64,000 bases of DNA from Trichoplax adhaerens (lineage: Eukaryota; Animalia; Placozoa), in contig NW_002060945.1 of assembly GCF_000150275.1 (NCBI RefSeq), positions 8,386,011 through 8,450,010 of the forward strand, given 5' to 3'. The translations under genes and the position numbers were made by a program. The notes beneath the pieces were generated by a model, which saw only the letters and a program-made list of their open reading frames with translations, did not search any database and was not told the origin of the DNA. This document shows, in pieces, positions 42,901-48,900 of the stretch. Numbering within the stretch: the first letter of the stretch is position 1; each line of letters opens with the position of its first letter.

Positions 42901-45900
42901 TAGTAGTAGACATTAGGCATCGACCTAACGCTAATAGGAGTGAACATATTAGCAAAGCTGAGTAGATTCCTATTATACTTCCGATATGAAGATCAAAGAG
43001 TGTGACAGAAGCAATTTTTTCTGCATTGGTTAGGTTATCTGGTAACCGCGTGAATTGATCCGACAACTGCGAGAGCCACCAATCGCAAAAAATTGTACTC
43101 GTTTGACTAATAGCGCATATTAGTATAAACATAATAAGGGTAGCTAATCCAAAGCCAGCCTTAAAGAAAAAGTAGTAAGTCGTGAGTGGCACAACGCCTT
43201 CTATCCTATCTTCAGTTTGAACCGATTCCTGAGGAGGCTTGGTAAAGTGATTCGTGTAGAAAATGAAGAGAGATCAGCATATACGGTACTTCATATATAA
43301 TTATACGTTGATTAGCTTTATTTATAATTTCTAATCTGTTGTTGCATTGACAGCATCAGTTTTATACTCTCGTATCATGTAGACTATGTTAGTAAAGTTT
43401 ATTAGAGCAAGGATACATAGAAAGATAGCATACTTCATTATTAGTTATTCCAGTCATATGTCTTGCAGAGATTGTATATCGCCTTTCTCGTGTTGGCACA
43501 GTTAGATTGCTAATTAAATAATGGCAAATTATAACCTATAAATCAATAAATTAATCTAGCTGTAGGCTAGTCATTGGATTTATAAAATATCTTACCTAAC
43601 AGACAAACTTTCAGTTTGTTTATCTTCTTCATCAGTCTTCACATAAGATAGAAAATCAATGCCTTTACCAACTAATTCTTCATATGTCCCATAATGTTGC
43701 AATTTGCCGTTATCTAATACTAAAATTTTATCTGCTCTTTTTAGATATTGTATCTGATGGGTTACCAATATACGCAATCGACCGCCAAGTAAATCGCAAA
43801 TACATCTTAAAATGAATAAAATTAGATTGCAGATTATCATTATGCTTGCTTCATGAAAGCGTTATTACTGCACTGATAATTAATAATTCATGGTCAATTT
43901 AAATGGACTTTTGAAACCAGAATGCTGAGATAATTCAATTATATTTTTATTACAACTAGCAATGGAGAATTGGCTTACCTCTCAAATAGCTGCCGACTAA
44001 CTTGAGGATCGACAGCACTTAAAGGATCATCTAAAAAGTATATATCAGCTCCGCAATAGGCCGCCCTATTATACAAAGAGCAAATTCTACTCAATGATCG
44101 ATTTTCAGCTTAAATAAAAATTGCAATTGGACGAAAAAATCTCCGACATAAAAGGCAAATTGAATTTCGTACTAGCCTGGCTAAATTAACTCTTGCTTTC
44201 TGCCCACCACTTAACTGCGTACCGCGCTCGCCAACATGAGTAGCATCGCCTAGGCGTAATCGATGAAAATCCTAAAATATTATAAATTATAGTATAAAAT
44301 AAATTTCATGGATCGGAATCAACAGGAATGGTGGCTATACGTCAACAATCTAAAGAGGTTAATTTATCTTGAATAGCCTTATCATTTACTAAAAACGAAA
44401 CTCTATGCTAACTAGAAATCAAAGGCTATGAATACCTTGTCTAAAGTACAAACTCTGATCACTTTACGATATTTCTCTTTGTCAAATGGTTTTCCGAATA
44501 AGATATTATCCTTTATCGTTCCTGGAACGAGCCACGGCGTTTGAGGAACATATGCAATATCTCCTTCATATCTACCAATAAGGGAAAATGTTTAAATTTG
44601 TCAAGGATTAGACATGGAGTCATATGGAAATTTTGGAGCTAAACTTTTAATGTATCGCTACCAAATGTTATTAATATTACATTATTTGTCCGTTTTCCAG
44701 TGGAATTTCCCCCATGAGGGCCATTAATAAAGTAGATTTTCCACTACCAACAGAACCAACAACTATACATAATTCATTTCCTTGAACAGAAAAGTTAATA
44801 TCCTGCAGGCTAAGATCTCCGCCCCAACCAGCAGAAATGCCCTCAGCTAGTAGCTTGCAATCGTCACCAACACAAGTAACTGAGCTAACAGAACGAATTC
44901 GACTTTTAGGAGTATCATTAATTTCCGATGTAATGGTATTTCGTCTCGTTTTCCTATCATCTTGACCCCATTGCGTAGGAGCATTGGTATTGTAGACATT
45001 ATTTCGTAACATTCTTCGGACACGTTGTAAAGCTTGAAAATTAGATGAATCTGGTTGATTTTTCTCAGTATCTACGTCTACGTCAGTATTCTGCCATAAA
45101 CGATACTCTTCCATTTCAATTTCTGTTGGAAGCTTTAAGGTATCTGCAACATTAAGTAACGGTAAAGTTTTTTTAGAGGAAGATGCTGCATCTCGAAAAG
45201 CAGGTCGACGCATGAGAGGATTTGTTGATTCTTTCCTTTCCTTACGAAGGACAGCTTTTTCTTCACTGGCCGTTTCATTGGTGGTCCTTGAAGGAAGGGT
45301 ATTAGTATTATCGATTTCGGACTGGTTCAACGACTCCTGAACTTTTAGTTTCTGCTCATTACATGATTCTGCTTGATCATGTACACTACCTTCTTGCTCT
45401 ATTTTCTTTGAAATTTCTCCATTAGGCAAAGCAAGTATACTACCGAATTTATTTTCCTTCTCCATCCTCTTCAAATTTTCATTTTCAGGCAATGAAAGCA
45501 AGTTATCTGAATTACGTTTCTCTACAACACTCTTGGAAGATTCATTTGTAGGTATCGGAAGTACATTACTCGAATTGATTTCCTCATCTGCTCTCTCTAG
45601 TGATTTATATTTACGCAAGACGAGCTTGTCATTAAAATTGTTCTCTTTCTCTACCCTATTCAAAAGTTCATTTGAAGGTAATGCAAGCATATTGTCCAAA
45701 CTATTTTCCTTCTTATTTGTCTTAGCAGATTCATTTGCAGGTATTGCAAGTATGCCGTTGGAAATAATTTCTTCTTTTATTCCCTTTAGCGTATTACAGT
45801 TAGGCCATGCAAGAATATCATTCGAATTATTTTCTACCATTCTTGAAGGTTTATCTTCAGGTACTAGAAGCATACTATGTAGATTGTTTTCTTTCCCTTT

Positions 45901-48900
45901 TGGCTCTAAGGATTCACCTTCAGGTAATGCTGTAATCTCATCGTTTTTGTCACGGATATTTTCTTTAATGAGATCGCTAGGATCGCCATTTCCACCCATG
46001 GAATTTATCCGTTCGGAATGAATATTACTTATAGGTGGTTCATGGATTGCGTTTTCGTTGGTATCTGCTGGTACTTCCAACGATATGCCATGCAAACTGG
46101 AACTATGAAGATCTTCATCTGCAAGCTCTTTTGCAGAGACAGTTGGAATTAAGTCTTGTTCCATCATAGCATTAGGGTTTGAGGGTAAATTTAATGCATT
46201 ATTTACTACCTTGTAATCATCAGAGCAGGTTGGTAAATTCTTATTTGCTTGCTCTTCTGATATTATCTTACTTTTACCTGTTGCCGTATCAGGCTGAGCA
46301 TGCAATTCGTCAGATATGTCGTCGCGAACTTTTAGCTTTTCGGCTTTATGTACAGCTGGTTCCGTTGCGGAATTTTCATCGCTGTGATCGTGCAATGATT
46401 CAGTATTAATATCAAAATTCGTATCCTCTTCCATGTTCTGTTCGGGCTGAAAATTCTTATTTACGTGGACTTGCCGTGGCAAAAATTCCTCTTTCTTTCC
46501 CGTAACTTTACTTTCTCCGTCGTTGTTAGTCAAAGTAGGGTGTAAGTTATTTTGGTTTACTTCGGATTGATAATTTTGGTTAATGTGACTTCCATTCTGC
46601 GTAATATTCTCAATATTATTATCGTCATTAGAATAAGGCTTATAATTGAGAATTTGGACTCCATTTTCCGAAATTAATTGATATTTCTTGTCAATACGTT
46701 TCTTTCTAATTCGAAGAATCCTGGGGGACGCAATATCTTGATGAATAGAAGTAGAATTTGGAACTGTATCGCAATTAGCCCTATCACCCTGTTGGGGAAT
46801 TTGATTGCCAGCTTTCTTTATCGAGTTAGTTGCCATTTCATCGGCCTTTGCTCGATTACGTTTAGTGGCATTGAATTCGAATATTTTTCTATCATCTTTT
46901 GATAGTGCATTCCTTCTCCTAGCCTTAAGAGTAACACGCTTAGCGTGTTTTTGAGGAGGATCTTCCGTAGTTACACTTGAACTACTTTTACTCGTAGTTT
47001 CATTAGTTGCTTGATTAGAAAATGCCATATTAATAGCTTCAGTTAATGAAATTCCCCTTTTATTGCCTTCTTCGCCCGATGTCGATGGCGCTATGGTTTC
47101 CTGTTGATGAATAGGCTCATTTTGGGAATTATTCTGGGACAGAACTACAGAAGGTGGCGTTGGAACTGTACTTAAATCATCATTGATATTGTCACTATCA
47201 GTAATAGTAGGAAAATCGTTAGTTTCAATATTTTCAACATGAGTATTTAACACTTTCTTTTTCAATGACGATCTTTTCGGCATTGTAGTTTTTGCTCCAG
47301 TGCTCGAAATGCCACTATCGTCATGACCATGATTAATTTGATGATTCGATTCTTGCGATTTAGGTAGAGATTTTGGAGAATTTATTCTTGATACATCAGT
47401 GGTATCTTCGTTCTGATAAGATTCATCCTCTTCATCGATAAAAAAAGTAACAGAAGGCCTTTTACCTCGCCTATAGTTCTTAGTATCATCGTCATTGCAA
47501 TCATTATCTTTTGATTCGGCAGACTCATTATTATTTTTTCCTACATTATCAAATGAGCTGGCATAGCGGTTTTCAGTGCTTTCTATCATGGACATTGTTC
47601 TATATACTTTTTCATTCTTATTACTGCCGAGACCTGCAATGATCGGATTAGTTAATATGCCGGCATCGGAAGATCTTCTCCGATTCATTATTGATCTTGC
47701 GGCAGCCTGCTCCGATTGAATTCTTTTGAGTGTTTGTATAATCCGATCGGAGTATTCTGCATCAGATAGTTGCCTTGAGGGGGTTCTCTTCTTCTTATTT
47801 GGTAGTGCAACAATAGCAGCTGCAGTTCTACCTTCTACAACTAAACAGCTATTATCGTCAACAACGGTAGATGTACTTGCAGTCCTCACCAATTTAGGCG
47901 ATTTTTGGGGGCTGGTTTGAACGCTCATACAGATTGTATCCGAATCATCACTTGATTCTCCATCTAGACCCCTGATATCTATGGTCGACAATGGTCTACT
48001 TACAGTTCTCGAGCTGGCAGCGCTATCATCGCGTATTTTCACGATATCATTCTCATTGCTGCTATCATTTTCGTCATTTTCATGGTCTTCGTCATTTTCG
48101 TGGCTAATATCAAATGTAACGATCGCGAAATCGTCGGGAACATCTAAACTGGTTTCATCTTCACAGTGGTCTTCCATCAGGAGAAAATTCTACACATTTT
48201 AAGAGGTGATCACAAGATTATCCAATGATATGCTATTTCCTGACATTTTATAAGACTATTAATAGTTTATGAGAGATTCAATGACATATAACATTACTGC
48301 TTGTACAAAATAACAAAATATATCATGCCGATAGGATATTGCGGTTTTTATACCTCTAATCTTCTGACCGTGACAACTCCATCAACGAGTGCATGGATTG
48401 ATTCAGGAATACCGATCATAATCGTGGTTTGGACAGCACTTAGAAGCGAAAAAACAGTAAAGACTATCGGTGGATTCAGTGGATTACCAAGTAAAACGTA
48501 GAGAATGAGGCACACAAAGGTCACGAAGGATGTGGAAGTAAAATACATTGCCATATTAGTTGCCTGGATACAAGCAGCGCGTAAAACCTGGCTAACTTCT
48601 TTCCTGGAATAGATCAAGGTAGAATAATTTCAATTAATCCATCACAGATATAATTATTTATAGACAAAATCTAGCTATAGTGCTCTCAGTAGTGGATAAT
48701 ATGCTTTTTTGGTATTCTGCTATAGTGCTAAGATATAGCCTACTGTAAATGTGATATAGTGTAGAATGACAGGATATTACCACATTAGTATTTGCTGAAT
48801 TATGTATTGCTATGAGTAGCTTGAGATGTAATCAGTTAGTATATGGATCTTAGATGATTAGTAAGAAACTACAAATTACTATGGAAATGATATACATGCA

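Follow-up and report, generated by a model that had tools for sequence, protein, structure and literature searches.

A giant coding insertion between TMD1 and NBD1 in an ABCC4-like transporter gene of Trichoplax adhaerens

Introduction

Control by a large disordered phospho-domain is regarded as peculiar to CFTR among ATP-binding cassette (ABC) transporters (PMC8640958). The R domain of CFTR lies between nucleotide-binding domain 1 (NBD1) and transmembrane domain 2 (TMD2); it is disordered and poorly conserved overall, with conserved PKA sites, and the closest relative of CFTR is ABCC4 (PMC8640958). The linkers joining TMD1 to NBD1 are little known in any ABC transporter (bioRxiv 10.1101/2025.03.10.640553). 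In CFTR, the first NBD1 strand has this linker (aa 376-386) on one side and the regulatory insertion (RI; aa 404-436), which is disordered and phosphorylated, on the other, and both have an effect on how the domains assemble (bioRxiv 10.1101/2025.03.10.640553). Here we describe an ABCC4-like gene in a 64,000-nucleotide stretch of Trichoplax adhaerens DNA (contig NW_002060945.1, positions 8,386,011 to 8,450,010; hereafter the window), in which a coding insertion of about 1,085 residues occupies the place of the TMD1-NBD1 linker. In the literature searched, we found no description of a placozoan ABCC gene with such an insert.

Like the R domain, the insert is a long disordered cytosolic segment on a short-ABCC core, enriched in dibasic PKA-type sites and poorly conserved overall while sites are conserved. 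Disorder and multiple dibasic PKA consensus sites, by which an R domain is recognized, are thus both present. It differs from the R domain in lying between TMD1 and NBD1 instead of between NBD1 and TMD2, and in its size of about 1,085 aa compared with about 200 aa. No homology between the two was detected, as a phmmer search with the insert against 1.84 billion representative proteins returned no CFTR. The CFTR linker and RI share the protein neighbourhood of the insert, but RI is about 32 aa long and follows the first NBD1 strand, whereas the insert precedes it. An initial annotation of the window, made from the DNA letters, had set the insert against the differently placed R domain of CFTR, the closest relative of ABCC4, in agreement with the published account (PMC8640958), and had proposed the convergent acquisition of an R domain. 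Disorder, dibasic sites and the different position all stood up, while position and sequence fail to make the insert a member of the R-domain family. As a statement about how the segment might work, the likeness appears fair, judged from composition and motif counts.

Anatomy of the giant exon

The insert is encoded by a 3,509-nt exon at 44681-48189 on the minus strand, which is free of stops over 1,169 codons. Read on the plus strand, the same interval contains many stops, and each of the other five frames across it has 37-170. The next-longest open frame in all six frames of the window reaches at most 355 codons, and the chance of a 1,169-codon open frame is about 1e-38, given 7.2% stop triplets. 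Third codon positions of the giant exon (A.32, C.14, G.15, T.39) are composed like those of the conserved exons of the gene.

All features described here lie on the minus strand. The preceding exon (48354-48602), placed by RNA contig joints and by alignment with human ABCC4, encodes transmembrane helix 6 (TM6) and its cytosolic extension and finishes in ...VTVRRLE. It is followed by a 164-nt GT..AG intron (48190-48353). The giant exon begins with NFLLMED, carries the linker start and the insert, and finishes in the first 64 residues of NBD1 (44681-44874), comprising the first strand and the Walker A motif GSVGSGKS. This last part has the only Pfam match in the exon, ABC_tran at residues 1128-1169 (29.4 bits, cut-off 25), and matches the NBD1 of both CFTR and ABCC4. 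The first NBD1 strand, ISAGW, continues directly into LQDINF, so the insert sits before the first strand, at a site where a tether of about 25-35 residues normally connects the cytosolic end of TM6 with the first beta strand of NBD1. In this gene, 1,152 residues separate RRL from the Walker A lysine. A 109-nt GT..AG intron (44572-44680) leads to the next NBD1 exon with the Q-loop region (44435-44571), which is followed by the exons bearing the LSGGQ signature (44176-44270) and Walker B (43979-44064), all three read from RNA contigs and translation. Neighbouring exons in the spliced RNA contig measure 72-249 nt.

The initial annotation had described an insertion of about 1,100 residues between TMD1 and NBD1 in one stop-free exon, without naming a strand. 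Its exon borders coincide exactly with the RNA joints described below, and the net insertion comes to about 1,085 aa. We are highly confident of this anatomy: a genuine coding insertion of about 1,085 residues is present in one of ten ABCC4-like paralogues.

Expression and splicing

Seventeen public runs contain the stretch or part of it, and contigs of four runs, from four studies, were placed on 43500-49300. The contigs of run X1 are unspliced and look like DNA. In run X5, a single spliced contig of 5,165 nt contains the complete giant exon uncut. It is made up of 43734-43805, 43979-44064, 44176-44270, 44435-44571, 44681-48189, 48354-48602 and 48993-49124. All gaps that it skips read CT..AC on the plus strand, i.e. 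GT..AG on the minus strand, and its end at 49124 runs on into the next upstream exon. Contigs of X6 and X8, the latter a recorded RNA library that bears a different organism label, contain both flanking junctions (48189 to 48354 and 44571 to 44681, both also joined in X5) and tile the giant exon. The whole-exon form is a properly spliced transcript in three independent studies, as had been anticipated from the open frame.

It might still be argued that the main mRNA splices out most of the region and that the full exon represents a retained-intron form. This would fit with the loss of rare variants from contigs, and with a distant relative, described below, which has a donor-like site and an in-frame stop at codon ~118 as well as an acceptor-like site upstream of the C-terminal edge. 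The contigs of X5, X6 and X8, however, contain no minus-strand junction inside the giant exon, while the six neighbouring introns are all removed in them. Furthermore, an intron is unlikely to stay open for 1,100 codons (~1e-38), and the codon-position composition is coding-like. We consider a mostly intronic region very unlikely; splicing-out of this kind, which the initial annotation had named as evidence against an insert, was not seen in these contigs.

One X8 contig (depth 7.2, with 30 nt on one side) skips 81 nt at 46825-46905. The skipped segment is bounded by GT..AG on the plus strand, opposite to the strand of the gene, and could reflect an antisense spliced RNA, an artefact of assembly or a deletion in a strain; a deletion would take out exon residues ~429-455 (27 codons) and leave the frame intact. 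In X5, X6 and X8, a much deeper contig shares a few tens of bases with the exon (~47600-47627) and continues into unrelated sequence that is not in the window. Only the gene's own contig, however, spans the variant sites 47577 and 47602, and the deep contig probably stems from an abundant transcript of unrelated origin that matches the exon over a short length by chance.

Family identity and paralogues

Domain and homology searches were all made exon by exon. The TMD1-end exon aligns with residues 305-386 of human ABCC4 (E 1.8e-11) and the NBD1 start with residues 427-467. Among solved structures, human and bovine ABCC4 are the best matches for the TMD1-end and TMD2-start pieces (E 1e-11 to 5e-13), followed by ABCC5 and ABCC2, which bears out the ABCC4-type assignment made initially. 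For the NBD1-start piece, CFTR matches slightly better than ABCC4. The best database protein is an amphioxus MRP4-like protein. ABC_membrane scored 27.9 bits on the TMD2 fragment, slightly below the fragment cut-off of 28. Both NBDs keep their Walker A, Walker B, signature and H-loop motifs intact. Walker A, signature and Walker B follow one another in correct order in the open reading frames (ORFs) of the exons, as in ABCC4/MRP4, and the gene has the TMD1-NBD1-TMD2-NBD2 layout of a short ABCC4-like ABCC protein. The gene is a real, expressed and previously undescribed variant of a known ABCC4-like transporter type.

The genome of the window (105.6 Mb, 1,414 contigs) contains nine further ABCC paralogues. 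Eight are on the same contig at 8.156-8.503 Mb (C1412:8156000-8503000) and one is at C1414:7381000. At least ten ABCC4-like genes are thereby present, nine of them clustered within about 350 kb of one contig. All nine paralogues share with the present gene the intron that follows the TM6 end ...RIE, and in every one the NBD1-start exon is short, its open frame covering merely 84-93 codons.

With at least nine similar genes clustered on its contig, this one could be a redundant copy that is becoming a pseudogene, with the insert as damage. The gene is transcribed and correctly spliced, however, the motifs of both NBDs are intact, and the TMD1 exon of an orthologue shows a ratio of non-synonymous to synonymous divergence (dN/dS) of 0.02. 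Decay of this paralogue is hardly credible on these grounds.

The abrupt jump in length, confined to one of ten paralogues, would also be expected from the in-frame capture of foreign coding sequence, be it part of another gene, a retro-copy or a mobile element. A second copy or relative of the insert was found neither at the protein nor at the DNA level in the window's genome. The insert contains no Pfam domain, the related proteins detected are fragments of orthologues only, and its composition is like that of host exons. We therefore see a very slim chance that the insert is captured coding sequence. MAFFT puts the exon start and the first NBD1 strand in the same columns, and the first ~30 exon residues ([13 protein letters not shown]) were examined as a relic duplicate of the first NBD1 strand ([13 protein letters not shown]). 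This reading was dropped, because residues 8-45 fitted a profile built from the paralogue linkers poorly (-0.5 bits, equalled or surpassed by 81% of shuffles) and DNA identity was 19/39.

The neighbouring paralogue finishes in a 346-codon ORF (59783-60823, minus strand), of which the tail past NBD2 is S/N/D/E-rich and disordered. This tail contains the sites RRYRSVSQP and RTRSQP, and a single LLSLP in a KEK...LLSLP context like that of the repeat core of the insert. A common origin of insert and tail was rejected (BLASTP E ~0.9), the shared part being the short LLSLP alone.

Linker length in ABCC4-like proteins

The distance from the L of RRL to the Walker A lysine was surveyed in 115 ABCC4-like proteins, collected by a search seeded with the amphioxus MRP4-like protein. 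In 110 of the 115 it is 65-78 residues, compared with 1,152 here; the survey is skewed to chordates and to proteins of up to 2,320 aa, and similar cases are possible elsewhere. The largest distance in credible gene models is 128. Two longer values belong to models (P0023 and P0077) in which a 20-residue segment at the end of TM6 is repeated 3-7 times, apparently an artefact of the gene model or of the assembly. The Trichoplax gene thus departs from the short ABCC4-like type in the tens-of-residues tether between TM6 and NBD1. That this linker is normally short, as had been stated initially, holds for human ABCC4, other ABCC4-like proteins and the nine paralogues, and the possibility raised at the same time, that similarly long linkers are common among invertebrate ABCC4-like genes, did not materialize within this chordate-skewed set.

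The nearest parallels are two amphioxus ABCC4-like paralogues, P0017 and P0019, with distances of 126-128. They have an extra polar segment at exactly the same site, from LLLDE to the first NBD1 strand. It amounts to only about 60 residues, however, and has neither repeats nor similarity to the insert.

Composition, motifs and repeats of the insert

The insert is rich in S (10.9%), N (10.7%), E (8.8%), D (7.9%), K (7.3%) and T (6.8%) and poor in aromatic residues (2.9%). A charge-hydropathy plot places the insert as a whole on the disordered side, together with nine of eleven 100-residue windows. A search of the ESM Atlas gave sub-threshold matches to other disordered proteins (best score 0.77). 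Single-sequence AlphaFold2 prediction yielded a mean pLDDT of 32 with almost no secondary structure, although this is weak evidence of disorder, as the NBD1 fragment likewise scored low. Taken with the lack of Pfam matches, the insert looks disordered, as originally described.

All the basophilic kinase-type sites listed in the initial annotation are present (RTAS, RQLS, RRRSS, RTMS, KRPS, KRSS, KRVT, RKES, RRNT and RIRSVS). They cluster near both ends, at residues 53-310 (47260-48033) and 985-1100. Both [RK][RK]x[ST] sites (9 against 3.2 ± 1.7 in shuffles, p ~0.005) and Rxx[ST] sites (18 against 10.7 ± 2.9, p ~0.012) are enriched, which is owed in part to repeat duplication and to the basic and serine-rich composition. 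SP/TP and CK2 patterns showed no enrichment, and no PxIxIT, RVxF or 14-3-3 patterns were found in the insert.

Motif spacing at residues ~750-935 (45385-45942) revealed about nine degenerate repeats of 21 aa that have hydrophobic-L-x-[LIVW]-P as their core. The units are spaced 19-21 residues apart and most keep the LxLP core. The ELM-type LxVP calcineurin docking pattern, L.[LIVAPM]P, is present 10 times where 1.1 would be expected, the copies being repeats of one unit. A DNA tandem-repeat search found no array at this region, the units having diverged too far at that level. That most of them keep LxLP nevertheless suggests that the core has been maintained.

Conservation and possible function

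An HMMER (phmmer) search of the insert against the 1.84 billion representative proteins gave two matches only, P0001 and P0002. Both are fragments on short genomic contigs (L001 and L002, respectively; 1.5-1.8 kb) from other samples. A word-indexed search of proteins of 643-2,047 aa and two scans of Joint Genome Institute (JGI) metagenomes found no relatives of the insert, the second scan giving merely an unrelated ABC NBD. The collections searched may be without records of the source genome and its close kin, so these negatives are no sign of an unannotated gene. L002 carries a TMD1-end exon, then an intron and then the insert start. We assign it to an orthologue from a related species, because its TMD1-end exon is 92% identical to that of the present gene, compared with 49% for the nearest paralogue in the genome. 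P0002 aligns with the N-terminal edge of the insert (residues 1-117; 47839-48189), which has an acidic start followed by an S/T-rich part with RPLS and RTAS sites, at 49% identity over 117 residues. P0001 covers the last ~180 residues of the insert at 39% identity (168 aligned) and is contiguous with the NBD1 start (75%), after which an intron and the next exon follow. These residues form the C-terminal edge (residues 925-1105; 44875-45417), with the sites RKES, RRNT and RIRSVS.

Between the two species, synonymous change has reached saturation (pS 0.64-0.74, dS >1.4). Non-synonymous divergence (dN) amounts to 0.04 at the TMD1 end and 0.16 at the NBD1 start, and rises to 0.41 in the N-terminal edge and 0.56 in the C-terminal edge, giving a dN/dS of ~0.1-0.4 for the edges, with dS saturated. 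The edges look to be evolving about ten times faster than the core and yet to be constrained. Several of the basophilic sites are kept in the distant orthologue across the two edges, namely RPLS, RTxS, [RK]KE[ST], RRx[ST] and, just before NBD1, RxRSxS. Also kept, and near-identical in P0001, is a block of about 38 residues (977-1014; 45148-45261) with the core RRPAFRDA followed by SSSKK..PLL.

On balance, we lean towards the view that the insert, besides being real, serves at least in part as an arm for regulation or docking. This view is favoured because ~300 edge residues are constrained, far beyond the ancestral tether of ~30 residues, because specific basophilic sites and one block are conserved, and because the repeat core persists and the segment has not shrunk.

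Besides the low NBD1 score in AlphaFold2 and the compositional share of the motif enrichment, several findings weigh against such a function. The open frame by itself is no proof of it, because a stop would also remove NBD1-TMD2-NBD2, and selection on these downstream domains would hold the frame open even if the insert were functionless. A minor short isoform could escape contigs, which lose rare variants. The middle of the insert (residues 118-924; 45418-47838), N/S/E/D/K-rich and about 800 residues long, has no detectable homologue among the 1.84 billion representatives. Among close strains, the 28 listed differences in the exon comprise 9 synonymous and 19 non-synonymous changes; the resulting pN/pS of 0.56 is not significantly below neutral (p = 0.12). 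Finally, the frame of L002 is shut by a TAA at a strong donor-like site, AG|GTAAAC, after codon ~117, and that of L001 by a TAG where its contig begins, within an acceptor-like tract no more than ~250 codons ahead of NBD1. The distant relative therefore probably splits the region with introns or has part of it missing. Given the donor-like closure of L002 after 117 codons of the insert, the middle could be specific to one lineage or be spliced in another way in the relative.

The comparison of orthologues that had been suggested initially accordingly gave a divided answer: the two edges are constrained in the distant orthologue, but the middle ~800 aa lacks a homologue and strain variation is not clearly below neutral. 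The same applies to stops in orthologues, which had been put forward as evidence against the insert. The edges align, but the relative's frame shuts at intron-like sites.

The main rival to a functional arm is neutral filler: a low-complexity expansion, of a kind typical of A+T-rich genomes, that a permissive linker at the protein surface tolerates and whose edges are the original linker plus slowly decaying sequence. Both the strain pN/pS and the middle without homologue are what such an expansion would show, as are the N/S/K/E/D-rich composition and the 36% G+C of the region. The amphioxus paralogues, which vary by about +60 aa at the same linker, indicate that the site tolerates insertions, and the neighbouring paralogue likewise has a disordered extension. 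It is harder to reconcile with ~300 edge residues that remain alignable at saturated synonymous divergence with a dN/dS well below 1, or with the conservation of particular basophilic sites and of the ~38-residue block. Moreover, old repeats retain a common core motif, no insertions or deletions among strains were found in the giant exon in the contigs of the placed runs, and a functionless 3.3-kb segment would be expected to shrink via in-frame deletion. We give this explanation an appreciable, though minority, chance.

If the insert is a functional arm, it would loop out from the NBD1 side as a flexible cytosolic extension. Its conserved ends, with the basophilic PKA/AGC-type sites and the RRPAFRDA block, would most likely bind back on the transporter core or on a partner in a phosphorylation-dependent manner, and this binding would tune NBD1 engagement. 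The fast-evolving middle would provide spacing and, through its repeats, present the hydrophobic-LxLP docking motif in multivalent form. That phosphorylation regulates transport specifically is, in our estimate, possible but doubtful. It would be a further and unlikely step for an early-branching animal to have independently made an ABCC4-like exporter signal-gated, with the ends as PKA/AGC switches on NBD1 and the LxLP middle recruiting a phosphatase or partner, so that control in the style of the R domain would have arisen a second time in the ABCC family, by convergence.

A transporter that tolerates such a tether, more than 1,000 residues long and with conserved kinase-type sites at either end, would offer a natural experiment on the limits of uncoupling NBD1 from TM6 and on the origin of disordered regulatory modules. 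Built-in controls are at hand in the nine paralogues of this genome that have short linkers. Should the insert be functionless, it would be a clean, RNA-verified example of the size of neutral loop that an ABC exporter can carry.

Other observations

A minus-strand ORF at 52341-52484 aligns weakly (E 0.83) with residues 200-224 of MRP1, at the start of L0, which would be a faint hint of a protein that begins at the lasso (L0) motif and has no TMD0; the 5' end lies outside the RNA contigs. Within the giant exon, a 162-codon ORF is present on the plus strand at 45533-46021. It is antisense to the gene and most likely a by-product of skewed strand composition.

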